In this document: positions 3,298 to 23,300 of the stretch, piece by piece
How the letters are laid out: the number at the start of each line of letters is the position of its first letter
How positions within the stretch are numbered: the stretch's first letter is position 1
Source: Botryllus schlosseri
Lineage: Eukaryota
Direction of reading: 5' to 3'
NCBI GenBank assembly: GCA_051294905.1
Contig: CM119383.1
Coordinates: forward strand, 6,696,001-6,760,000
DNA length: 64,000 nt
Notes under the pieces: model-generated
Seen by the model: the letters and a program-made list of their open reading frames with translations, nothing else
Told to the model about the DNA's origin: nothing
The model's database searches: none
Position numbers and translations under genes: made by a program

Positions 3298-4605
3298 CTA
3301 GGATCGAATCGACACAGAATTGAGAGATTCATCTTCCTCCTCGTCGCTGGATCGCTCGTATTCGCTGGAATGATATAGAGACCCTTGAGAAAACTCATCG
3401 TCACTGTCTCCCTGGAGTGTTATCCCTACTGTTGGTTTCTTTTTGATTTTCGACTTCCGCCGTTTTGGCTTTACATCTCTTCCTGCACCGTGACGGTTGG
3501 AGAGCCGCCTCAATGGAACTATAACCCCTAATGGTTGATTACCAACATTAGGCAATTCTTGAGGTTGTGACTTCCCATGTCGAAATATAGTTTTGTCGGC
3601 ATGCCGCGGTATATCTTCACGACCGGATGGTGTTTGGAATTTATTGCCGCTAGTCGAATCAACGGACTGAAAGGTCGGTACTTCGCTGCGGGTGGATATT
3701 TTCCTCTTTGCCGCAGCTCTGTCAGCTACTTTGCGTTGCCTATTCCGTATATGTTGATATAACAACTGCACAAACTCGGTGACGGATAAAATGAAACATA
3801 TGGCGCTCAAAATATTCATGTAACACATAAATATAGTTTTCTCCCATGGCCTCGAGACCCAGCAAGGAACGTATCCTGGATACTTTCCCAAGTTCAGATG
3901 CTGCCCACACGCCCACTCTACGTTCTCACCTTCACATAGATAGACTTGCGGAACTTTGATCAAAACAATACTCAATGGGTTGAATGAATCTTCGACAGTA
4001 TAGTCAGTGACGTGATACAGATTGTACGCCAGGTATAGCGACATCCCTTCCAGAACAAATCTGATGAATACATTGATAAGATATGCAATTCTTATCTCTC
4101 GCGTTACTGTCACGCTCACCAGATTGTTATTTTGGTAAATCTTTTTTTCCTTGAAACCGCTCACGCTTTTTCTTCGCCTCAACATTTTCTTCTTCATTCT
4201 CACAGCTTTTGCTCTTTTCATTTCGTCTTCGGTGTTATACACGCCATTGTCAGCATCATAATCTGATTGAGTATCATATCCTTCTGCCGCCCTGACTTTC
4301 TCTACTCGTCCGCGAACGTTGAGGCTATAAAAGTGGAACACGACAGCAGGCGCAGATATCGCCAGCAGCTGAAAAGCCCAATAACGAATATGGGATATCT
4401 TGGAGAATTTATCGTAGCATACATTGTCGCAGCCGATTACTTTTGTACTGCAACGAAACGCGGACTGCTCGTCGCTGTATACCGATTGTCCCACGGTTAC
4501 GACTACGATCAGACGGAAGACAAACACCAACAAATACCAAACTTTCCCGGCATTAGTACTGTAGCTGGTTACATGCTCAAGTATCTTCTCAAGTCCACCC
4601 CACAT
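3298..4605 (-). CDS. Connexin (gap junction protein), 435 aa, single coding exon
   Basis: N-terminus MWGGLEKIL...STNAGKVWYLLVFVFR; EL1 C-x6-C-x3-C (CSTKVIGCDNVCYD) followed by SHIRYW; four hydrophobic segments; EL2 ends in CWVSRPWEKTIF, the connexin SRPxEK motif. An in-frame stop lies upstream of the ATG at 4605. Confidence 0.97.
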   Translation of the reverse strand: MWGGLEKILEHVTSYSTNAGKVWYLLVFVFRLIVVVTVGQSVYSDEQSAFRCSTKVIGCDNVCYDKFSKISHIRYWAFQLLAISAPAVVFHFYSLNVRGRVEKVRAAEGYDTQSDYDADNGVYNTEDEMKRAKAVRMKKKMLRRRKSVSGFKEKKIYQNNNLVSVTVTREIRIAYLINVFIRFVLEGMSLYLAYNLYHVTDYTVEDSFNPLSIVLIKVPQVYLCEGENVEWACGQHLNLGKYPGYVPCWVSRPWEKTIFMCYMNILSAICFILSVTEFVQLLYQHIRNRQRKVADRAAAKRKISTRSEVPTFQSVDSTSGNKFQTPSGREDIPRHADKTIFRHGKSQPQELPNVGNQPLGVIVPLRRLSNRHGAGRDVKPKRRKSKIKKKPTVGITLQGDSDDEFSQGSLYHSSEYERSSDEEEDESLNSVSIRS

Positions 4606-9924: not shown

Positions 9925-10900
9925 TATTGCAGTCCAGTAACATTATAAGTCAAGGACTTTATTGGAGGTACAGAACTTCAATATACAATTGAGTATAGTA
10001 TATTCATATTGGAATGAACCTGAATATTTTCGGCTGACACTCGTCATGGGTAATCGCCAGCAACTAGAAGAGTCGCCGTATACGATATTGAATGGTTGGA
10101 AATTGCAACCCTCGAAATCGTCGTCGGTTCAACAGTTCTAGCACGTGCACGTGCACGTGCATATAGTTCATTGGTACTGAACGGGTGTTCTGATGATGAT
10201 GACCCCCGACAGTAAAATGCTGCATAACGATGTATATATAGTCTTGCTAAACTTTGTCCGTTTATAACAGGGTCGGAAGCCTTTTTCGCCAATGGAGTTT
10301 AGCTCATATTTTCAATTGTGAATGTCTATCCACAGTGACGTCGAAATGAAAGATTCGTGACGTTATGACTGAAAATACAAACAATAGAGAACATGTTCGC
10401 GCCCTGTTTCAAACAGACATCACCGGCACGAAATTTCGCTTAGCAGAAAATATTCGGGTTCACACCAATATGATAGGAATATTATGGAGTTACTATACCT
10501 GAGCTACACTGCCTTGGTGTACGAGGCCATGTTAGGCGATAACCGTCACTGCAATTTGTTGTATTGATATCAATAATAATGATAATTAGAAATCGTTTTG
10601 AACTCGCCACTACACTCTCAGCGAAAATAGTTTGTATTAACACCCAAAGGACCGAAAACGGTGGTCACGATATCAGAATTATATCGCGGTCACAAATCCC
10701 ATCCTTGTCGACGTGCAAACCTTGCTACGTTACTACGTGCCGTCGTGCATGCATAATTTGGATTAAAGTGCTGTACTCGAATTATTCCTCAGTACAAGTC
10801 TGCGGTGTTCTGGATTCGTGTGCCGTTGGTGTATATTCACACGACGACTGTATAGTCTATTTTAGATGAGTATAACACAGACATATATTGGACAGAACTC

Positions 10901-13900
10901 ATGCGTATATTGGCAAAAATGCATCTATTGAAAAGTATTCCCTTTGTAATATCATTGGTGGGATTCGTGGCGTGCAAGACCGCTCTGAATCCAAAATCAG
11001 GACCTTCTCATCAACCAATCCGCGAAGAAAATTTATCTAGCAATTACCAAGACTTTGACGTGGCCACAGGACATGATCGTTATTCTTCACACTCGGGTAA
11101 AACTAAAGACCCCGTTTCATTTGCGGACACATCCGATAGTCCCCGTACTGGAAGACATACCAAAATGGTTGATGCCACGGGAAAACTGAAGGTTCGTCAC
11201 AAGGGAAAGGAACGTCGACACAAGAAAATCAGTCACGATAATCAGGAGCTAGGGTGGCATTATTGCGCTGACGGTGGGAGACCGATAGACTTGAAAGATA
11301 TCAACGAAACAGAGTATACTGGGATGGGCTATATGTGTGGCGAGATGTACCCATCTTCGACTTGCTGTTACGATCACGACACGAACATGGATGTTACCGC
11401 CGACCAGGTTTGAATACATCTATTTCTTCGTCGTATCATAATTCAGAAGCTTAATTTTTTCAATCAAAACAATCGCAATATTGTGAAAGCTGGAAGTGAC
11501 GCGATATGTCTGGATAATACACATACCTCAACATACTGAGGTATTTTCATGCTGAAACATAACACCCTATTGGACCCGTCTCCCGTCATTACTTCGCAGG
11601 GACTATTCGAATCTGGAGAATAAATAAACATTTAACACGAAATTCCGTATTATCCAATAAATCTAACACAATAGATACTCATTTTTATCGCACTTGTAAT
11701 CGGCTCGAATTACCGTGAATCACAGCGTTACGTTACTTCGTTCGACGAGATGCTGACAATTAAAAGAGGCACTTCAAAGGCTTGCAGAGCACACATACAA
11801 GTGATACGTCAGATCATTTTGGGCGTGTGAAAATGTTTGTATAGAAGAAAGTATGTACGGATGTTGCACCAATCGTACCACACTTTTGCGATATCATATT
11901 AGCCCATACACAGGCATTTAACCTTCTTGGTCCTTGTCAGTCATCTAGCTAGACTAGACACCTTATTAAAAAGTTACAGCTCGAACTTCAACGTATGCAA
12001 TGCGTATCGAGACGACGTGGCCATTAAAATCTCCCATAAGTAGGCCTATGGGGTACATTCATCTATTTCTGGGATTGTCAGTAAATTTGGACGGAGCTGT
12101 CGCGAGAAGTCACAAAGAATAAACCAGCCGCTACATGCGTCCAGGCGCGTGTTTCTGCGCTATCACTATAATTATACATGTCGCATCGCTGTCGGAATGA
12201 CTATTGTAGCAATCTGCCAATGTATCCATGCCATATTATACATACCATGCGGTCGTGCGGGTGTTTTCTGATATCATGGTGCCCCTTACCCTAACCCTAT
12301 CCCAGTGGTTTCTAACCTTTACTAACCTGGGGAGCACTGACGCTAATCTACTAGCCTTCGGAAATCCAAATTTTTCACTGAGCCACTAAGTTAGGCTTAC
12401 CATATTTTGGAAATCAAAAAAGAGGACACTTTTTCAGAAATTTTCAACTTGCAGATCCGGAGTGAAATTCTCAAAAATCGGTTAATTTTTCCCACTTTGT
12501 GATCGGTTGACTAAAAAAAAAAGGTCATCTCTTCCGCTCAGAACTCAAAATACCGTTTTTCTCCCCACATTGCCAGATGGATGACTAAATAAAAAAAAAA
12601 AAAAAAAGGTCATCTTTTCGCTTAGAGCTAAAATCACCGTTTTTCACCCGTCGGAGCTTCACGTCTGTGCTAATATGTGGCATATCACTCGCAATTTGCT
12701 CTAAATCTGCTCTAAATCCTAAAAAAGAGGACAAAATCTCAAAAAAGAGGACAAAAGGGCGTCCTCCGAGGACACTTTCAAAAAAGTCAAAAAAGAGGAC
12801 AAATCCTCTTAAAAGAGGACGTATGGTAAGCCTACATTAAGTTAACACTCTACCACAATACACATCTAAACACACATCTATACTATAGATTACTGGTGCA
12901 CAAAAGTACAAACCAGCAATCCAATTTTCCTTCGAATTTGCTAGATACCATTTCTGCTGCTATAGCAACCGATTGGGAGCCTGAAAACGGCATATGAGAA
13001 AATACATCAGAATATGTTTGGTTCCAATCAACTATTTGGAGCATGGTCCTATTCCACCTATATAGGCCTAGTTCGTCAAAATCGTTACCGTACTTTCGTT
13101 TACATATAGGCCTATTATAGCCTACCTGATTCCTACATGTTGGGGCAGGTCAACACTCTTTCTTCAAAATTCGGACAGTAAACGTATTACAGATATTGGA
13201 GGAAATCCCACAGCACGAGTGTGCCAGAATGTTGATGAAGTTACGGTGCGCTCACTGCTCGCCAAGATCGTGGCGGTTATTTCACGCTCCCGATAGGATG
13301 CGCCTGCCTCACAAAAGAGTTCTTCCAATCATGTGCCCATCATTCTGCAAAAGGTTTCACGGGGCGTGCAGAAATTCAGTGGCAGGTAAGCACCATGCAT
13401 TTGTAAATTATCAATTTGTTGGCATTGATATTGTCAGTTCAGTGCTCAGTTGTAAAGTAGGCCTAGCTATACCAGGCCGTGTTTTTTCTCAGGCAAAACA
13501 AATATAATGACGAAAAAATCATGCATAATCCTTCATAGAATATCAAAATAATGTTATGCAATCAGAAGGATTTCCAATCGACTGCATGTTGTAGCGTATG
13601 TTGCGGATTATCAACACTTATGCGATCAAGATTATAGTATGACTGCAGGCTACTATAACTGGTGACGACTGCTTCTTGATTTGAAAAATCTCGGATATTC
13701 CAAACACAATCGATATCCGTCAACAAAATCCACAACCGTTTCCAGGTAGGCCTATACCTAGCAATCTCAAAACCTCCTCGGCAAGGCTCGCTCCACAGTA
13801 GCTCTGGGCATATTGAAAGTCACTGATAAAAATATACTAAAAAGCGAAGGCCTCGAGGAGCTTAGTATTGCGCAATCCAGTAGACCAGGCTAGATGTAGG

Positions 13901-14261
13901 TAGGCCTATCGGGCAAATTATTTCGGCGCACCTGGTGAATATTCGTTGAAATGCGTGTGGTCGTGAAATTTTCTGCTCATTGTGGCCATGTCTGGGGTCG
14001 GAACAATCTTGGCGGCCATTGTATTAATAAGTGTGATTACTTAAATTTATTCGTCGTGGATTCGTAGTCAACTAAGTAGTGTGACCAGTAACCAAAGGGC
14101 GAAGATCTCTATGTGGGGAGATGGACTTGGACTGCACCAAAACCTGATGAGCATCTCATTTTGCAGGCCTGGAAGGACACGATTTTTGCGAATATCACAC
14201 CACAGATGAAGATGGCCCATGCTTTCCTGACTCTGTCGTTCGACGTGGATCAATCGACTAA
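10901..14261 (+). CDS. HHIP: Hedgehog-interacting protein (HHIP)-like secreted protein, N-terminal cysteine-rich domain only; exons 10901-11407, 13193-13385, 14167-14261 (264 aa)
   Basis: Signal-peptide-like start. The spliced product reads MCGEMYPSSTCC...ECARMLMKLRCAHCSPRSWRLFHAP...VLPIMCPSFCKRFHGAC...DFCEYHTTDEDGPCFPD, matching the recalled vertebrate HHIP N-domain (LCGGFYPRLSCC...ECGKLLEEIKCALCSPHSQSLFHSP...VLPLLCKDYCKEFFYTC...EFCFYYARKDGGLCFPD). GT/AG sites and phases (0, 1) are consistent; TAA at 14259-14261. Confidence 0.88.
12392..12834. mobile_element. hAT-type MITE with AAAAGAGGAC subterminal repeats
   Basis: TIR TAGGCTTACCATA/TATGGTAAGCCTA; TSD CACTAAGT/CATTAAGT (7 of 8 match). It may sit inside an older element starting cagtggtttctaacc at about 12303. 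Confidence 0.85.
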
Positions 14262-16475
14262 TTTGCGTGACGTTTCTTAGATGTATGCATATATGTGTAA
14301 ATAAGGCGCTCAAGCTGGGTCCTGTCCTTTCGTGCACCAAGCAATAATATGATATTCTGAAGTTGAGAGGCTGCGACGAATCTGTCGTGGAAGAGTACGA
14401 CCCAATATATTCCACAATTCTCTGTATATACCAGTAGGCAATCAAATCACTTTGTATATCCTTGACGGTTTTCCACCATTTTAGTCTGCGAAACATTAGA
14501 CGTCATGTCTCCGCCGGATGTTATTCTACACGACTGCAATTATTCCTCTGACAGAGTAGGCTATAAAAGGCCAAGTTAGAATGAAACCGGTAACTTTATC
14601 TTCGTCCATATGCAGTGGAAGACGATCTAGATAAGACGCGAGCGGATCCTCAAATTTCGGTTCATAATACATCCTAATTCGGCTAGAAATATAACGCGAG
14701 GTATGAAGCAACTTCAGATTCAGTCTCGCCATAACCTTAAAATTGAGAAAATCTCACAGCGACTCATCACACAACTTCACACGCACAAGGCAAATGGCAC
14801 TGATCTTTGTCTCCCCTGACCCATCACACACACAGAGACATACGCGAGAGGAAAAACGCCACTTGAAAACGTTTTTAGTTGTATTTTCCGTAACTCAATA
14901 CATCGGTAATGAAATATAGATAATAAACAAAATTTCTCTATTCCGACAAAAATTCATAAATAAGAAAGGTTCAACAAATCGACAGAAGCCGGAGTTTGTT
15001 CGTGAGACGCAACAAGGAGGGTCTTCTTACACTGTCAGGTAGCACACGAATCATGAACAAGAGCGCTCCGTATCGACGCACCAAATATTCCACCTCATAC
15101 TTAGATATTAATCAGTGATTTTCCACGAATGACGAGACACTTTCACAATATTATTGACGGACAAGGGCGTTTCCAAGGAATATCAGTCGCAGAATGTAAA
15201 GGCTCCAGTGAACTGACAACAAAAGCAGGTTTCAAATATTCTGAAATAAATTTTGATCACAATTGAACCACACAATTCCGTATACCTCTTATTGCACAAC
15301 AGGAGCCCATTAACAGCATACACAGAATTGCGTGGCGATACAGAAAATATGACCAGCGATAAAGCTGTACTGGAAACGGAGTAAATTCCTATCCTATGTT
15401 ACTGCATTAAATTTTCAAGATAAATTGATAGGAAATGATTGGTTAGCGGTAAAAGTAACTTCCAAGCGCTAATATGTATTGAGTGAACACGCAAAGAGAG
15501 ATAGCACAGTAGCAGAGGAACCATCGTTGAAGCGTAGCCGGCCTATAACAGCCCGTAGTTTTGTGCATTGCAAAAGATACAGCGATAGACCACATTCAAA
15601 TTCAAGGATTAATCTGTAACAGTTTTACATGTTTCAACAAGGGATTCACGGTGAATAATAACATTGGGAAATCAATCTGTAACATCACACCGAAATAAGG
15701 GCACCAGTGGATTGTGCTATACTTCTAGCCAACTTCCAAATTAGTACTTGAAACTAATGATACCAGCAGATATTAAGGATGTGGGTCCCAACCTCAACAT
15801 CACAGCTAATATTAATTTCACAATTTACCATCGAGAGACTCCCACAAAAACGTGAAATCGCACAGACACTGATGCATGTGCTGAGACATACAATTACAGT
15901 CACGAAGACGTCCAGTTATGGCTCACAAGCCACAAAACGAACAAATCCCGCACCCGAATTTTGCGGCGAGTTGTTTCACATTTAAAACAACCAATGCTAC
16001 TGAATCAACATAAACTAAGACCGAAGAGCTTCTTGAAGGTACAGAACTTCAACATACAATTGAATACTGTGTGCATATTGAAATGAATCCGAATATTTTC
16101 CGCCGACACGCCTCATGGGTAATCGACCGAACTAGTAGAGAATTGGAAAAAACATTTTATATCGACAATCGTATGACAAAATATGGCGTCACTGGCATGA
16201 AATTCCGAATAATCCGAAAAGATCCGGGTTCGTTTCAATATGAATATACTAAACAAACTACAACATAAACACAAATAACCGTCAGTAAAAACAGGAAATT
16301 GGAGGACAGGCGGAGATACAACAGTGCCGTGAGCGAATGAGCCATACGATTCATTGACGGGGCTGGGCAAAATCCAAATACCTGTGTGAATCAGTTCAAA
16401 ATAGAGTAGATCGAGCCGAATGTTCAATTGTCATGGGTGTGGATGTTGTGTAAAGTTAAAATCAATACAATTGTA

Positions 16476-16959
16476 CGGGGGTGTTCGAAAATAACTTTTT
16501 TTTCACAAATTGTACGGGCTATTTGACAAAATTGTGAGGTTGTCTGAAAAAGCAATGCACAACAGATTTGGCTCGATTCCAACCAGTACAAGCAAAGTAG
16601 GAAATTTTGGATTTGGAAAAAATAGTATTTACTCATTTATAATATCTACCCACCGTGAATACTGTGATTTGAAATCTCAAATTTTAAACATCAATAACTT
16701 CGTTTCTACTGGTTCGAATCGAGTCAAATCGGTTGTGCATCGTTTTTTTGTCAGACAACCTAATAATTTCATGAGGAAGCCAACAAAATTTCAAATAATA
16801 TTATATCATTAAATAAATCCAAAACTTTTTCTCTTATAGCGATGCCACTATAGGCTGGAATTGAGCCAAAATTGAGTTGCGGAGTTTTTTAGGTAACTTA
16901 ACAATTTTACGTCGTAGCCAGTACAATAAAAAAGAAGAAGTTATTTTTGAACACCCCTA
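16476..16959. mobile_element. MITE with GGGGTGTTCGAAAATAAC/GTTATTTTTGAACACCCC termini
   Basis: An 18-20 bp imperfect TIR resembling the termini of the 39578-40105 element; no clean TSD. Confidence 0.65.
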
Positions 16960-17372
16960 TGGTACATGCACATTTCGAGTGACCACGAAAAAATATCGCC
17001 AGTTCTTCACCACATAATGACAATTTGGTAATATTTTGACCATGGATATTCCACGGCACGTTGTGACAACGGGTTGATCATGACGTTCGTGTAATTTCAG
17101 CGGTCGAAAAAACGCCTCGAATCATTGCAATCAATACTCAATCATAGTGCCCAGTCCTACTCAACAAAAACAGCAAGATTCCCGACGTCTCCAAACGTGA
17201 ACCGGGATAATTTAACGCAGTATCAAATCAAGTATAAAGTCCACCGACTCGGCGACAGCCTCCCACCACGCCAAAGGCACAGAGAGAAGATCCGCATCGC
17301 GTACGAAACCGTCTTCACGAACCAAACTTTCTCGTCATCTCCAATCTCTCGGATTCGCGCGCTAACGTCTCG

Positions 17373-20300
17373 CTACTTGCCCGTTTTCTCCTTATTTTTT
17401 CTCTGGAAAAATGTCCTCTTTATAAAATTAGTCTTCCTGCCCTTGTCGACGCCAACAACAGATACATTCTCCGCACTAGATAAGCTGGCCGAGTCCAGCG
17501 AGCCGTTAGTTTCCGTACGCTGCTTCGGCGAGCTAGCCAACCGTACGCCGTTGTCTTTCACAGCAGGCAAGGACTGCACACTGGGGGAACGTTTCGACGC
17601 CGTCAACCGCTCGGTCGAATTCGTCGTCTCAGATTTTTCCGTCACAGGGGAATTCCCGTTAGATTTCGCCGCATCATCGTTTTCAGATTTTACCGCGTCG
17701 CCGTTTTCCGTAAAGTCCGGCAACTGCGCTCGGCGTTTCGCGACCGGCGATCTTTTCGGGAATGTTTGGTTGCCGCTCTCCGGTATCTCTAAATGCGACG
17801 GAAGCTCTTTGGCGCTTTGCGAGTGGACGATGGTTTTAGTTTCCTTGGTCGGCTGGGAGCCTTTGCGCTGCTTCTTTGGGTCGGCGTGACTCGACAAGTT
17901 GACGGGCACGCTTGTGTTTGAAGGCATGGTTCCGAATTTTCGACTCGGGTTCGGACTGAAAAGTATTCAACATGAAAACGGATTAAAAGATGACCGACCA
18001 AAATTTAATAATTCCTAATTCGATAATTCTTAACCTGGTGAACCCTTCCACTAATCTGCAAGCTTTTGGAGAACCCAAAATATTCGCCGAGTCAAGAAAT
18101 ACACAAAAATCTCATACATTACCATGGAACACTAGTGCACAACAATAGTTCTAAAAGAACAAAACAATTACGACAAGATTTTCACACAAAACAAAAAGAT
18201 TATATGTGGCATCTGCTGTATGAGCCGAGTGTGTATCTTTACCTCCAGCAAACCAATGGGGTGAGCTTCTAACCCTGTTAAGAACAGCTGTTCTTTAAGT
18301 AGCATCTGTCTGTACCAATATTTCATTGTGGGATTATACGCGATTTTCTCGCATAATCCACCATCAATACCGCACTATACGACTGTTCAGACCTACACGC
18401 TACCTTATAACGTCCAATTAGTTCAGTCGGAGAATATTATGGTGTCATTGCTTTCGGTATTATCAAATCACATATAAACGAGACAAACAGCGTTCTTCAC
18501 ATAATAAATGACACAGGAATAGTTAATAATATGTATCAGGGTTGATATTGGGCCGTTTTCATGCCCCCATTGTTAAAATCTGGCCGTATTTTCGGACAGT
18601 TAGTTGCTTTACTTCCAAACTATACTTGGCCGTGAAAATATATAGACTTCACGAGTGTTACAGTCAAATTTTCTGGCAAAATAATGCACAGATTATACAC
18701 TGAATAGCGCCAAAAGTTTTTGTAACTGTCAATTCGAACGCTGCTGTGACTTATACAGAGTTTGTAACCGATAGCATAACTCCAGAGTTTCATGCAAACC
18801 TACCTAGAATACAATTTTACAGCGGGAAGGTGATTGAAACACGGGTTGAAAGAACTACCTCATCTTAAGTAAAAACTGCGATCAAAGATAGCCTTACAAA
18901 TACAAACATACCTCGACTTCAACTACAAACAGTACCGGGAGTAATCATATATATCGGACAAACAATATGATGTAAAAATCATTTTAAAACGTACCTTTTC
19001 CTCTGAGCACCAGAATTAAAATTCAGCATACTGACCGAGTCCAAATCCTCGTCTTGCACAGTACTAAAAGACAATGCAGAGCATAAGTTGTGATGCGCAG
19101 TTACAGCGAGTATACAACGTTCACCTACCACACAGAAGGCCGTTTACTTTTCCTATGCCTCGGCATCGCAGAGCTGGAGTTTACGGATACGATGCTCATG
19201 GTGTCTAAACCTGAGAGGTACACGAAAGCAGAGTTGGTCAAAGTAGCTATCGTTGGTGGTACCGAAGTAGAAGTAACGCAGGGTTGTAACGACTCGAGTC
19301 ATGAATCCACTGGAGATTTTTTGCGGATCGAGTCATTTTTTAAATATGGAAAACGACTTGGACTAGGCCCTTTGCACTTTGACTTGAAAATGATTCGACT
19401 CGACAAAATTGACTTGTGACTTGGAACCTGGTTAAAACCCTGAAGTAGCGTCTTATATTTCTATGGAGTGCAAGGCAGGGTTGTAACCAAGTCACAAGGC
19501 TCCGAGTCACAAGTCAATCTCACTTTTATAGTTTTGACTCGAGTCAAGTCGAGTCATTTTCAATTCCCACCGAGTCAAGTCCGAGTCCAAATCAGCGAAC
19601 AGAGGATCGAGTCCGAGTCATGGTATTATGACTCGAGTCCGAGTCCAAGTCATTGTGTTGACTGCTCAGTTTCCAGTTAAAGTCTTCCTAAACCCACTTT
19701 TTCAACTCTGTTTGGTGATATTGAATGGTTCGAATTTATAATATATCAATTTTCCTCACTTTTAGCAGTTTCTGGTCGCATTTTCAAGCACCAGTACCAA
19801 CAAACGAAATCCCAATGGTGTGTTGGCTTCGAAATTACCATGAAATGTCGGCCTTGGCCGTCTGAATCTTGAGTCAATGACTTGCTTCGAGTCATGCGCA
19901 ATGACTCGAGTCCAAGTCGAGTCAATACACAGATTGTCTCGAGTCGAGTCATCCGAAAATCATGACTCGAGTCGAGTCATGACTCGAGTCATTACAACCC
20001 TGGTGCAAGGACAAGTAGAGATTCCTAAGTGTGTAAAATTATTCTGGGCCTGGTTTTGCCCAAAAAAACTGAACTGTTGAAAAAAGTTGAAAGTAATCCT
20101 AAAACATAACCACTCACAGTGCAAGTACGCAAAACCTACCGAGTAGGCCTACTCGAAAAATGTAGACGTTATTTGTCACTGCATGAAAGTCACTTGACCA
20201 GGAAAAATCGAGTAAAATCCAACTCGGACCACTAACCAACATACGAAATTTCCTAACGAAATCTGCATTTTTCAAAGATTCTAAGTAGCGTTCCATAGGG

Positions 20301-23300
20301 TTATAGGATTAGTTAACAAGAACACCAAGAAACCCATACTGGATAGCATGTCTTCTTCCGGCGTGCCTTTGGTTCGCGGCGTCTTGCTCGATTTGATCCG
20401 GAATTTACAGAGGCTTTCGATTGTCGTCCATCTCTTCTTGCGTTCCTTCATTATGCTCTGTAGCTCCACAAACTCGTCCCTACGCGACGAAAACGAACAG
20501 TGCAAAGCACACAGAAAGATGTATAAATTTGGGTCGCGACAGCACCAAAGTGGTCGTTTACTATCTGTACCGACAAGATAGCGTAATGGTGGCGGTTCCA
20601 GCGTCTTGATCGGTAGGTCGTGGATTCAATCACTGGACAGGTCATACCAAATACCTGATACAACTGGTATCAGTGGCTTTCAAGCTTGGCACTCAGCCTT
20701 TCCAGGATAGTGTGGAAGGGTAGAGGAAGACTTAGAAAGCTTTACGTGTCCAGTGGCATATATACATCATGTACACACGACACACGGTATGCATATGCAC
20801 AGATCGTGTGTATATGTATCATGGCGTTGCTAGACTACAGGAGTCGACGCATACGCCGCAAGAAGTACAAACGTCCCATTCCTATGTCATATTTTTGAAT
20901 TTCTTGGAAAACAAATTTTTGCATGATTTTCGATTGATAGAGGGACGAGGGACAGGTTCATTTGCCATCATGCTGGACAGCTACGAAAATGCAGAGCACT
21001 ATAACTCTTGATGATTCGTTCTTGTTAGTAAACTGTCAATAGTTTCCTGCCCACTCTTTATCCGTTGTTAATCATCAGCGGCACGCAGTATCTAATTGTC
21101 AGACGGTACTTGGTGTAGTACTAAATGGAAACATTTTAATAACATATTCATGCTGAGAATATCGAAAGTTTTTGTGCAGACACTGACTATTGCCGACACT
21201 CTTCGGGGAGGGAGGAATCGTCAGCAACTGAGACCTATTTGAAAAATTTGAGTTTCACAATATAAAACCAGTCATGAAATTTTATGAAGTAGAAACAAAT
21301 ATACCATAACATTTTCTGCTTGAACGTGAATTCCTAGGGGATTTTATGTATTCTCGGTATGAACGGAATATCAAAATGTGTCCATGCCCCAAAAAATCCC
21401 TTCAAAAACACCCGTCAGGCTGTCATGGCGACACTGTAAAGGCTGAAATTTTCCAATCGCCAGGAATTTCGTTCTTGGTTACGTCCTAACATGTCGGCTC
21501 TCGGACTCGATTCTGGGAAGCAACGTCCTACCTTTAAAAATGCGGAGGGAATTTCCTGAATTAACGGGACTTTCTTGAATTAACGTGATTAAACTAAACA
21601 ACCACTATTTAGCAGTAGTTTGAACATTTTGCCACTTGACATGGGTATGATGACTATATATCAGTTAGAACTGATTACAGTTTGCTGGATGATGTGGTAT
21701 GGTTGGTGCTCTTTCTTGCTGTCTCCTCTCCAACTATTGTGGTTGAGTAAGGATATTTTAATTCCCATAACACAATATCAGCCACTGCGAACAAACAATT
21801 TATCTGCCTAAATTCCAATGCTGGAAGAGTTGTGAACCAGACACGTTTATCTTCTGTTCTATCATCGAATTTGCCTTACATTAATAGCTAGTTGAGAAGG
21901 AAAAGACCTTTGCACAAATTTTTTAAAACATTCAAAGCCAGTGGCCTACGTTTAGTATGACTCAAAGATACCATTTAAAATCCAGATGAGCACAAAGCAA
22001 AGTGAAGATTAATAACCAACCTGGTCTCTTGCATTTTCGAATCGAACCGATCCATCTGTCGGCTGTGAACGACTTGCAATATCCCGAGCAGCGACGATCG
22101 GTTTTTCTCAATCTTTTGAAACTGCGAAATAATGCTAAATCACTTGGGGTTGCTTTTCAAAATGGCAAATATCAGTATGTGTATGAAATCAGATTCAAAA
22201 TAGCAACTACCATCGCATCAAACCAGAAAAGAGAAGTTCCATCACTGAGCAAGTGACGTTTTTATGAAGTGATTCCACCAGTTTTTGACACATTGTGCCA
22301 AATTGTCACAACGGCCTAAACACAGGTTGCTGACTTTGGACAATTTTCCAATTCATATCTAAATAATTTTGTAAGGTTATGGTTTTCTGCCTTATTCAAC
22401 TTTGTTACACGGGGATGGATTACAGCAGTGGATAAAGCAGGAAATTAAGAATTTTTTCCTGCTTACAATCTAATTTTTAAATCTTCCTGCGGTGGCCAAA
22501 ATCACCCGTTAACGTTAGCCGAGCACCGTTCTCGCGGTGTAACACAGCTAGCAATCTAATATGCCACACAAGATGAACTTGGTCTTTTACAGTCATTTCA
22601 AAAATAAATATCTATCCAACGGTAACATTTCATGATTAAATTGAATCCACACGGCCCTTGTAGCTGATCTTGTGAATAGTCTTTAAAGAGTCACTCAGCT
22701 TTGCTTTGCAGGAAGCTTCCGTTTCCTTGGCATATTGAACCAGTTTGGATGTTACTGACACTATGTAAATAATACCGATGTTAGCTGATTGTGAATAGCT
22801 GGCCAATGTCCCCCATAAATTGCAGAGAAATGAAATGAATATGATCGGCCGAATGATATTGACAATTTGGAAATAATGGACTGTGTTTTAGATCAAGAAA
22901 ACCAAAAATTTTAGTCACATGTATAGTTTTTGTCTCCAAATGAAAGGAAATCGCCTGAAATACTTGCTTTCCACGTAAACCAAACAAAGTTTGAGGACGT
23001 AAAATGAACAGTGAATTTTCTTTCCCTACCCGTCAATATAGAGGGGAAAATTTGTTAAAATATTGTATTAAACATCAACTTTGCAATGATAGCACTACGG
23101 TACTGTATTGATGCATATTGTTCCTAAATGACAGTTTGAGATACTTATACCTCGATATTTTGTTCGATAGCAGCATTAGAAACACATATATTGGTTTCTG
23201 GTCAAAGTCCCTCAGCATTGCTAAAGCATTACGGAAACATAAAATAAGCAAGGGAGCTTGTGCCAAACCTGCGCCTTAGTCATCTCCAAGTCTTCTTGCA

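Follow-up and report, generated by a model that had tools for sequence, protein, structure and literature searches.

Hedgehog-interacting protein (HHIP) has been called a vertebrate-specific Hedgehog antagonist, and the role of its N-terminal domain (HHIP-N) has been described as a long-standing mystery (PMC4460154, PMC8660895). The blade-3 loop of the HHIP β-propeller inserts into the zinc site of Hedgehog, while HHIP-N consists of a glycosaminoglycan (GAG)-binding subdomain and a pocket-type cysteine-rich domain (CRD), binds heparin, heparan sulfate and polyethylene glycol (PEG)-cholesterol (dissociation constant: 23 µM), and raises the inhibition of lipidated Sonic hedgehog by HHIP (PMC8660895). 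The disulfides of human HHIP-N are C39-78, C69-112, C79-115, C103-152, C141-179 and C145-168 (PMC8660895). Vertebrate HHIP binds heparan sulfate via basic clusters around the first cysteine (PMC4460154, PMC8660895), and those which flank this residue, HS1 (RRRR) before it and HS2 (KRR) after it, anchor HHIP to heparan sulfate and to basement membranes (PMC4460154). Here we describe an HHIP-like gene in a 64,000-nucleotide stretch of the genome of the ascidian Botryllus schlosseri (GCA_051294905.1; contig CM119383.1, positions 6,696,001 to 6,760,000 of the forward strand), hereafter the window, in which positions are counted from the first nucleotide. This gene is very probably an ascidian HHIP orthologue which has been reduced to the N-terminal module and encodes a 264 amino acid (aa) secreted protein; the mechanism by which it may act is inferred separately and is treated below.

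The gene is read in a single plus-strand frame of 264 codons plus TAA, distributed over three exons (10901-11407, 13193-13385 and 14167-14261). Both introns have GT/AG borders and the TAA codon (14259-14261) lies 11 codons past the CFPD motif, an arrangement which had been proposed in the initial annotation and is confirmed by both the translation and RNA. The product contains 13 cysteines, one of which is located in the signal peptide and twelve in the domain (positions 122, 146, 155, 156, 179, 188, 191, 217, 221, 228, 241 and 252), and runs from a signal-peptide-like start (residues 1-25) through a low-complexity spacer (26-87), a basic stretch (88-111) and the 12-cysteine domain to the tail CFPDSVVRRGSID. 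The individual features are the following:

10901-11407, plus strand: exon 1, 169 codons, with the start codon, signal peptide, spacer, basic cluster and first four domain cysteines (translation, RNA).
10901-10975, plus strand: predicted signal peptide, residues 1-25, with the hydrophobic core IPFVISLVGFVA (read from the sequence).
11162-11233, plus strand: basic cluster, residues 88-111, net charge +8, a candidate GAG-binding stretch (charge count).
11264-11407, plus strand: initial portion of the HHIP-N-like domain (Cys122, 146, 155 and 156), net acidic, corresponding to the GAG-binding subdomain of HHIP-N (alignment).
11408-13192, plus strand: intron 1, phase 0, positioned as in vertebrate HHIP (RNA joint, intron mapping).
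13193-13385, plus strand: exon 2, the CRD core (Cys179, 188, 191, 217, 221 and 228; Pfam Folate_rec, PDB match).
13386-14166, plus strand: intron 2, phase 1, splitting a Gly codon, with position and phase as in vertebrate HHIP (RNA joint, mapping).
13493-13745, plus strand: minor cassette exon of 253 nt (joints 13385/13493 and 13745/14167, in RNA run X3 only; depth 4).
14167-14261, plus strand: coding part of exon 3, with Cys241, Cys252, the CFPD motif, the tail VVRRGSID and TAA (translation).
14262-14850, plus strand: 3′ untranslated region (UTR) contiguous with exon 3 (RNA contigs, raw reads).

The acidic stretch after the first cysteine and the basic cluster upstream of it, both of which had been pointed out beforehand, are reflected in the charge counts: residues 122-146, from Cys1 to Cys2, carry a net charge of -3, while the +8 cluster sits 11-34 residues ahead of Cys1. 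A genomic fragment of a sister species (P0001), the sole find of a word-index protein search with exon 1, shares 79% identity with this exon, and since its open reading frame (ORF) begins at the equivalent of Met7, the true start codon may be located at 10919 rather than 10901. One RNA contig of run X3 begins at 10894, just ahead of exon 1.

The spliced product has no reference identifier, and analyses on the whole protein made use of its exon pieces or of the Styela or Ciona orthologue. Exon 2 alone matches the Pfam family Folate_rec (PF03024) at 31.1 bits, above the gathering cut-off of 29.8 bits, as does the Ciona orthologue (32.4 bits), while those of Styela (28.9 bits) and Clavelina (25.7 bits) fall just below it. 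In a phmmer comparison against all PDB sequences the sole match to exon 2 is HHIP's N-terminal domain (7PGK/7PGL; E: 2.9e-13), with no PDB match to folate receptors even at E≤10. Among 1.84 billion representative proteins searched with HMMER, 31 match exon 2, headed by ascidian sequences of 240 aa (68% identity) and 246 aa (66%) and a 75-aa fragment (71%). These are followed by a 792-aa amphioxus 'hedgehog-interacting protein-like' (50% over exon 2), then by vertebrate HHIPs and genomic fragments of them (38-45% over exon 2), and lastly by one divergent non-HHIP CRD (E: 6e-5). The more N-terminal part of the domain is also recognizable, with the N-terminal part of amphioxus HHIP matching positions 11258-11392 by tblastn (E: 7e-4). 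A MAFFT alignment places all twelve of the HHIP-N disulfide cysteines (12/12) and the CFPD motif in the ascidian protein, with CRD identities of 68% to Styela, 58% to Ciona, 51% to Clavelina, 38% to amphioxus and 31-34% to vertebrate HHIP.

Structural ranking with an AlphaFold2 model of the Styela CRD, which was used for coarse fold ranking only and not for the pocket or disulfides, gave a similar picture. The PDB entries 7PGK/7PGL are the sole significant Foldseek matches of its better-predicted core, and in Swiss-Prot the model ranks human and mouse HHIP at E-values of 2e-5 and 7e-5 (28-29% identity), with HHIPL2 and HHIPL1 at 0.15-0.25 in the same ranking. Sequences of HHIPL1 and HHIPL2 were absent from the results of a word-index search with amphioxus HHIP, which consisted mostly of bacterial glucose/sorbosone dehydrogenases. 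Judged by its sequence, the domain of the ascidian protein is of the HHIP type.

The exon structure points in the same direction. Exon 2 corresponds to HHIP residues 94-157 and to the codon of Gly158, which is split after its first base. In vertebrate genomic read-through fragments, the HHIP match starts at residue 93 in 18 of 20 cases and stops at residue 158 in 13 of 20, and the read-through signatures, Q-I on entering exon 2 and G-K on leaving it, are the same in the Botryllus gene and vertebrate HHIP. The position and phase of both introns are hence those of vertebrate HHIP, as shown by the borders of exon 2 and the Q and G-K read-through signatures.

Orthologues could be identified in Ciona intestinalis (XP_002127824; 240 aa), Clavelina lepadiformis (XP_076813562; 246 aa) and Styela clava (XP_039263617; 268 aa), the last of which is the closest to the Botryllus protein. 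Folate_rec is the sole Pfam domain family matched by these three RefSeq models. All four ascidian proteins carry a basic cluster at the matching position before the first cysteine and share the C-terminal end CFPD-x3-[RK]-G-[ST]-ID, so that the tunicate survey proposed in the initial annotation found the three other species to end at the same C-terminus as Botryllus. Together, Botryllus, Ciona, Clavelina and Styela span all three traditional ascidian orders. The proteins of the amphioxus species B. belcheri, B. floridae and B. lanceolatum are full length, with a CRD, long linker, propeller, EGF repeats and C-terminal Kunitz domain, and as amphioxus keeps a full-length HHIP, the ascidian truncation is a derived trait. 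A Kunitz/BPTI domain follows the EGF repeats at residues 855-905 of an amphioxus protein (P0067) and at residues 631-682 of HHIP isoform X3 of the manta ray Mobula birostris (P0037); since the manta-ray HHIP isoform likewise ends in a Kunitz domain, the amphioxus protein can be tied to HHIP proper. The ancestral chordate HHIP may thus have possessed a C-terminal Kunitz domain which was later replaced by a C-terminal helix in the main vertebrate isoform. The most parsimonious account is that HHIP was full length in the chordate ancestor and that all that lies beyond the CRD was lost in the ascidian, perhaps tunicate, stem. The ascidian stop falls in what remains coding exon 3 in vertebrates, approximately 30 residues past the conserved intron. 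The stingray Hypanus sabinus furthermore has a RefSeq-predicted intron-retention isoform, 'HHIP-like isoform X1' (P0018; 233 aa), which would have a CRD-only product, and short HHIP-N-only isoforms may exist in vertebrates.

RNA from four different studies, comprising three contig runs and one raw-read run, was mapped on positions 10851-16850. The exon joints 11407/13193 and 13385/14167 are present in 4/4 runs, with raw-read support of 18 and 27 reads, respectively. Depth is zero in the introns except over an interspersed repeat, and because of this zero depth elsewhere in the introns the contig runs, labelled 'RNA?', are taken to represent genuine RNA. The repeat in question, at 12392-12835 in intron 1 (~445 bp), had 3098 candidates in a first look at the genome, 40 of which were scored and found to be 90-97% identical, and is covered by RNA contigs at a depth of up to ~46,000. 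It is a young and abundantly transcribed element resembling a short interspersed element or a miniature inverted-repeat transposable element (MITE).

At the 3′ end, a single contig (X8 record 16) holds exons 1, 2 and 3 and continues unspliced past TAA to 14437, while X1 record 5 extends over 14163-14834 and X8 record 20 over 14426-14853. Raw-read depth drops past ~14450 and the contigs finish at 14834-14860; the distal coverage could instead belong to the convergent gene, the libraries being unstranded. In the four RNA runs, exon 3 has no outgoing splice joint before 14259 and 14617-14680 has no incoming one, so that the alternative last exon suggested at the latter position was not upheld. 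Splicing out of exon 3 before 14259 and an assembly gap had both been named as findings that would overturn the initial annotation; they were looked for in the RNA and in the window sequence, which contains no N, and neither was found. The cassette exon at 13493-13745 shifts the frame and is predicted by translation to yield a 252-aa protein which lacks the last two cysteines; it is probably unproductive and noise-like. Downstream of the gene, a single-copy transcribed block at 14888-16052 shows a depth unlike that of the HHIP-like 3′ UTR and no ORF longer than 68 aa, and is probably a long 3′ UTR of the convergent gene. The hexamers TTTATT and TTTAAT, which would represent minus-strand poly(A) signals, are absent throughout 14262-17400.

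The RNA also revealed a small number of sequence variants. None of these affects the stop codon in the four runs, and the two which were found in exon 2 comprise one synonymous and one conservative change (R204K), while three of the five listed in the spacer change the amino acid (N44D, V54A and T56A). At 14244, a C>A change replaces an arginine of the conserved RRGSID tail by serine (R260S); it is fixed among the contigs of three runs, against 0/32 raw reads of the fourth, and is a polymorphism or population difference.

No trace of the remainder of HHIP was detected around the gene. Within the 64-kb window there is no Pfam match to the propeller family GSDH on its contig, tblastn with the propeller exons of the genome's own propeller genes returned only noise, and queries with the C-terminal two thirds of HHIP from amphioxus, goby and ray gave only matches at E>1 and no exon relics; Kunitz coding sequence is likewise absent from the window. 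The 3.1 kb between the stop codon and the convergent gene harbors no Cys-rich ORF and no propeller or EGF coding sequence, and ORF inspection and tblastn thereby agree with the initial annotation, which had reported no propeller or EGF exons before the convergent stop. The search of the whole assembly that it had called for was also performed, over 495.5 Mb in 219 contigs. Genome-wide, GSDH and two propeller-only queries, from amphioxus and fish, identified four loci, all of them on contig C11, none with the HHIP-type loop. The only other propeller match, on contig C5 (E: 0.73), includes two stops and is at chance level. Two hedgehog genes are present in the genome. As far as the assembled sequence goes, the genome is without an HHIP-type Hedgehog-binding propeller.

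The four CRD-and-propeller loci (L024-L040) are located at:

C11, ~4.12-4.15 Mb.
C11, 4.376-4.385 Mb.
C11, 4.845-4.901 Mb.
C11, 5.167-5.184 Mb.

A separate CRD exon of another type (CSPYAAH...DYCYP) lies upstream in each of these genes, and no EGF match is found downstream of their propellers. The sequence at the blade-3 position is GDGMITLDDMEEMDGLSDF in fish HHIP and GNGGVSEEDEENFDGLSDF in amphioxus HHIP, while all four C11 genes carry GDGGxGGDP…(A/G)QNK, an ordinary dehydrogenase-type motif; the acidic blade-3 loop of HHIP (…DDMEEMDGLSDF) is missing from 4/4 of the C11 propellers. With tblastn, the Botryllus HHIP-like protein finds none of the C11 loci at E≤0.05, while an unnamed non-HHIP CRD fragment (P0032) does match them, and the amphioxus HHIP CRD matches the short CRD gene only, genome-wide, and not the C11 CRD exons. 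ESM-Atlas look-ups for two of the C11 exons gave a generic GSDH match and a weak Frizzled (Fz) match. By architecture only, the predicted C11 genes are HHIPL-like. The copies at 4.38 and 4.87-4.90 Mb are near-identical in the exons seen, which suggests a recent segmental duplication, with the latter copy spread over more than 50 kb. In the 4.12 Mb copy, two Pfam GSDH matches contain in-frame stops, which may reflect intron sequence or damage. A third class of Folate_rec genes, with folate-receptor/riboflavin-binding-protein-like CRDs and a CSPN..PW motif (L001-L011), is found at:

C7, 2.672 Mb.
C12, 3.606 and 3.632 Mb (tandem pair).
C2, 1.429 Mb.

With vertebrate HHIP-N the ascidian protein shares the pattern of 12 cysteines and six disulfides, the CFPD motif and the pocket-type CRD of the Folate_rec kind (PMC8660895). 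It further shares with vertebrate HHIP a basic cluster beside the first cysteine and introns of the same position and phase flanking the core exon, and stops approximately where the linker between HHIP-N and HHIP-C begins. It differs in that the β-propeller, the zinc-binding blade-3 loop, the EGF repeats and the C-terminal helix are lacking, an acidic stretch takes the place of the basic GAG-binding helix after Cys1, and a larger basic cluster and a spacer of ~85 aa lie upstream. The closest CRD outside of the tunicates is that of the Branchiostoma HHIP-like proteins (XP_019621383 and XP_078683834; P0005 and P0067). The Ciona, Clavelina and Styela models have the same succession of signal peptide, spacer, basic cluster and CRD, but differ in the length and sequence of the spacer. 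HHIPL1, HHIPL2 and the C11 genes belong to the same Pfam family, Folate_rec, as regards their N-terminal CRD; the C11 genes differ, however, in the CRD signature given above and in a full sGDH-type propeller (GDGGxGGDP...AQNK), whereas the short protein lacks a propeller. A functional analogy can be drawn with the secreted Frizzled-related proteins (sFRPs), stand-alone secreted heparin-binding proteins with a lipid-binding CRD which can modulate a lipid-modified morphogen. They combine a groove-type Fz CRD with a netrin-like domain and form a different family, and similarity to sFRP or Fz-type CRDs is observed at the level of the CRD superfold only (Foldseek E: ~4). The gene is HHIP by descent, while in architecture it falls short of HHIP in the propeller with its zinc loop, the EGF repeats and the C-terminal anchor, and 'HHIP-N-only orthologue' is the appropriate term. 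The initial view of a stand-alone secreted HHIP N-domain is hence sustained by the RNA, the whole-genome search, the intron positions and the three ascidian orthologues.

The loss of the propeller and its zinc-binding blade-3 loop, together with the EGF repeats and C-terminal tail, very probably predates the divergence of the ascidian orders and left a six-disulfide pocket-type CRD of the folate-receptor/HHIP-N kind behind a signal peptide, spacer and basic cluster; amphioxus and vertebrates retain the lost parts. By analogy with vertebrate HHIP-N, the basic cluster may keep the protein attached to heparan sulfate at the cell surface or in the matrix, and a sterol or lipid may occupy the CRD pocket; the most plausible candidate is the cholesterol adduct carried by the two Hedgehog ligands which the genome encodes. 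The protein would then tune the spread or presentation of Hedgehog from the lipid side and with low affinity, rather than by blocking the zinc site in the manner of vertebrate HHIP-C. We put forward this heparan-sulfate-tethered, lipid-side modulator tentatively, as it appears rather less than evenly probable. More doubtful still is the wider proposal that HHIP-N is an autonomous extracellular module, which in ascidians might persist on its own, tethered to the matrix, and bind either the cholesterol adduct of Hedgehog or free sterol. The claim that the protein cannot inhibit Hedgehog by the canonical mechanism is accordingly retained in part: a loss of propeller-based binding is supported, but a lipid-side interaction with Hedgehog is possible because HHIP-N binds PEG-cholesterol and adds to the inhibition of Hedgehog (PMC8660895).

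Several observations weigh against the orthology or the mechanism proposed here. Because the vertebrate GAG helix between Cys1 and Cys2 is acidic in this protein, GAG binding, if kept, would use a different stretch, and the basic cluster might alternatively act as a proprotein-convertase site for removal of the spacer. The AlphaFold2 model of the Styela CRD, built from a 16-row alignment, is poor, with a mean predicted local distance difference test score of 56. A tree of 73 CRD columns sets the C11 genes apart (89/100) and joins the Botryllus gene with Styela (93/94), but contains no HHIPL1/2 sequences, leaves its other branches unresolved and was not used for orthology. The RNA libraries are unstranded and the contig runs lose rare isoforms, while the remaining ascidian sequences come from automated gene prediction and were surveyed at the protein level. 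Lastly, R260S indicates that at least one residue of the conserved tail is free to vary.

The tree and the presence of four genes with both CRD and propeller would accommodate a reading in which this gene is not the HHIP orthologue but some other folate-receptor/HHIPL CRD member, with the true HHIP among the four C11 genes. We consider this very unlikely, as the amphioxus HHIP CRD finds only this gene in the genome, the protein itself is without a match at the C11 loci to which the non-HHIP fragment P0032 does match, the C11 propellers lack the HHIP blade-3 loop and EGF repeats, the intron positions and phases are those of vertebrate HHIP, and the Swiss-Prot fold ranking places HHIP well above HHIPL1/2. 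It is extremely improbable that propeller exons exist and have been missed, whether far downstream, in an alternative isoform or through misassembly. Only four RNA runs were available, three of them as contigs, and a separate transcribed block does lie at 14888-16052; yet this block has no ORF exceeding 68 aa and no similarity to HHIP, contigs cross the stop codon, exon 3 has no outgoing joint, the window is gapless, propeller-only queries match nothing outside of the C11 genes, and the proteins of three further ascidians share this C-terminal end point. A decaying HHIP remnant, transcribed but functionless, is highly improbable as well. Gene death could have begun with the disappearance of two thirds of the protein, and R260S in the tail would be consistent with it, but Ciona, Clavelina, Styela and Botryllus all retain the twelve cysteines, CFPD and the exact C-terminus with 51-68% CRD identity, RNA from four studies shows expression with correct splicing, and variation in exon 2 is limited to synonymous or conservative (R204K) changes.

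The question of the ligand bears on the mechanism rather than on the origin of the gene. An HHIP-derived protein could also serve as a secreted carrier or sensor of another sterol, lipid or vitamin-like molecule unrelated to Hedgehog, and would then owe its retention to the usefulness of the pocket-type CRD alone. HHIP-N groups structurally with the pocket-type CRDs of NPC1, riboflavin-binding protein and the folate receptors (PMC8660895), Pfam places the domain in Folate_rec and the Hedgehog-binding propeller is gone. Furthermore, a Ciona gene model named 'hedgehog interacting protein', which may or may not correspond to the present gene, is a marker of the neural gland of adults, which is a secretory organ (PMC13542503). 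The sole ligand shown for HHIP-N is, however, a cholesterol mimic of the Hedgehog C-terminus (PMC8660895), and exon 2 finds no folate receptor at E≤10. A ligand unrelated to Hedgehog is, as such, possible but rather unlikely.

Other features of the window include the convergent neighbor on the minus strand (17373-17927 and 20284-20505), which fits the STIM assignment of the initial annotation; an exon ORF has a weak match (E: 6e-4), under the Pfam cut-off, to SOAR, the STIM1 Orai1-activating region. An intronless ORF of 435 aa on the minus strand at 3298-4605 clearly encodes a connexin (Pfam Connexin; E: 5e-58). The region at 16440-16970 is MITE-like by eye, with inverted ends (…GGGGTGTTCGAAAATAACTT… / …AAGTTATTTTTGAACACCCC…), and shows raised RNA depth at 16451-16650.

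No description of an ascidian HHIP was found in the searchable literature. Automated RefSeq and UniProt records already name short proteins 'hedgehog-interacting protein-like'; as to whether the CRD-only state had been described before, gene models thus exist but no paper was found. A 2026 study of Ciona reports KH.C2.605, 'hedgehog interacting protein', as a neural-gland marker (PMC13542503), but this model could not be linked to the present gene. Given this locus, amphioxus and the three other ascidians, HHIP predates the vertebrates. In their sister group only the N-domain survived, under apparent constraint, which amounts to a natural domain-deletion experiment and argues for a function of HHIP-N that is independent of the Hedgehog-binding propeller. 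It is also implied that ascidian Hedgehog signaling runs without a decoy of the HHIP type. The ascidian protein offers a small and tractable subject, in Ciona with established genetics, for finding the function and ligand of HHIP-N. Should HHIP-N prove to be an autonomous module, a whole lineage would regulate Hedgehog without the zinc-site decoy, and the function of the vertebrate N-domain could be studied in isolation.

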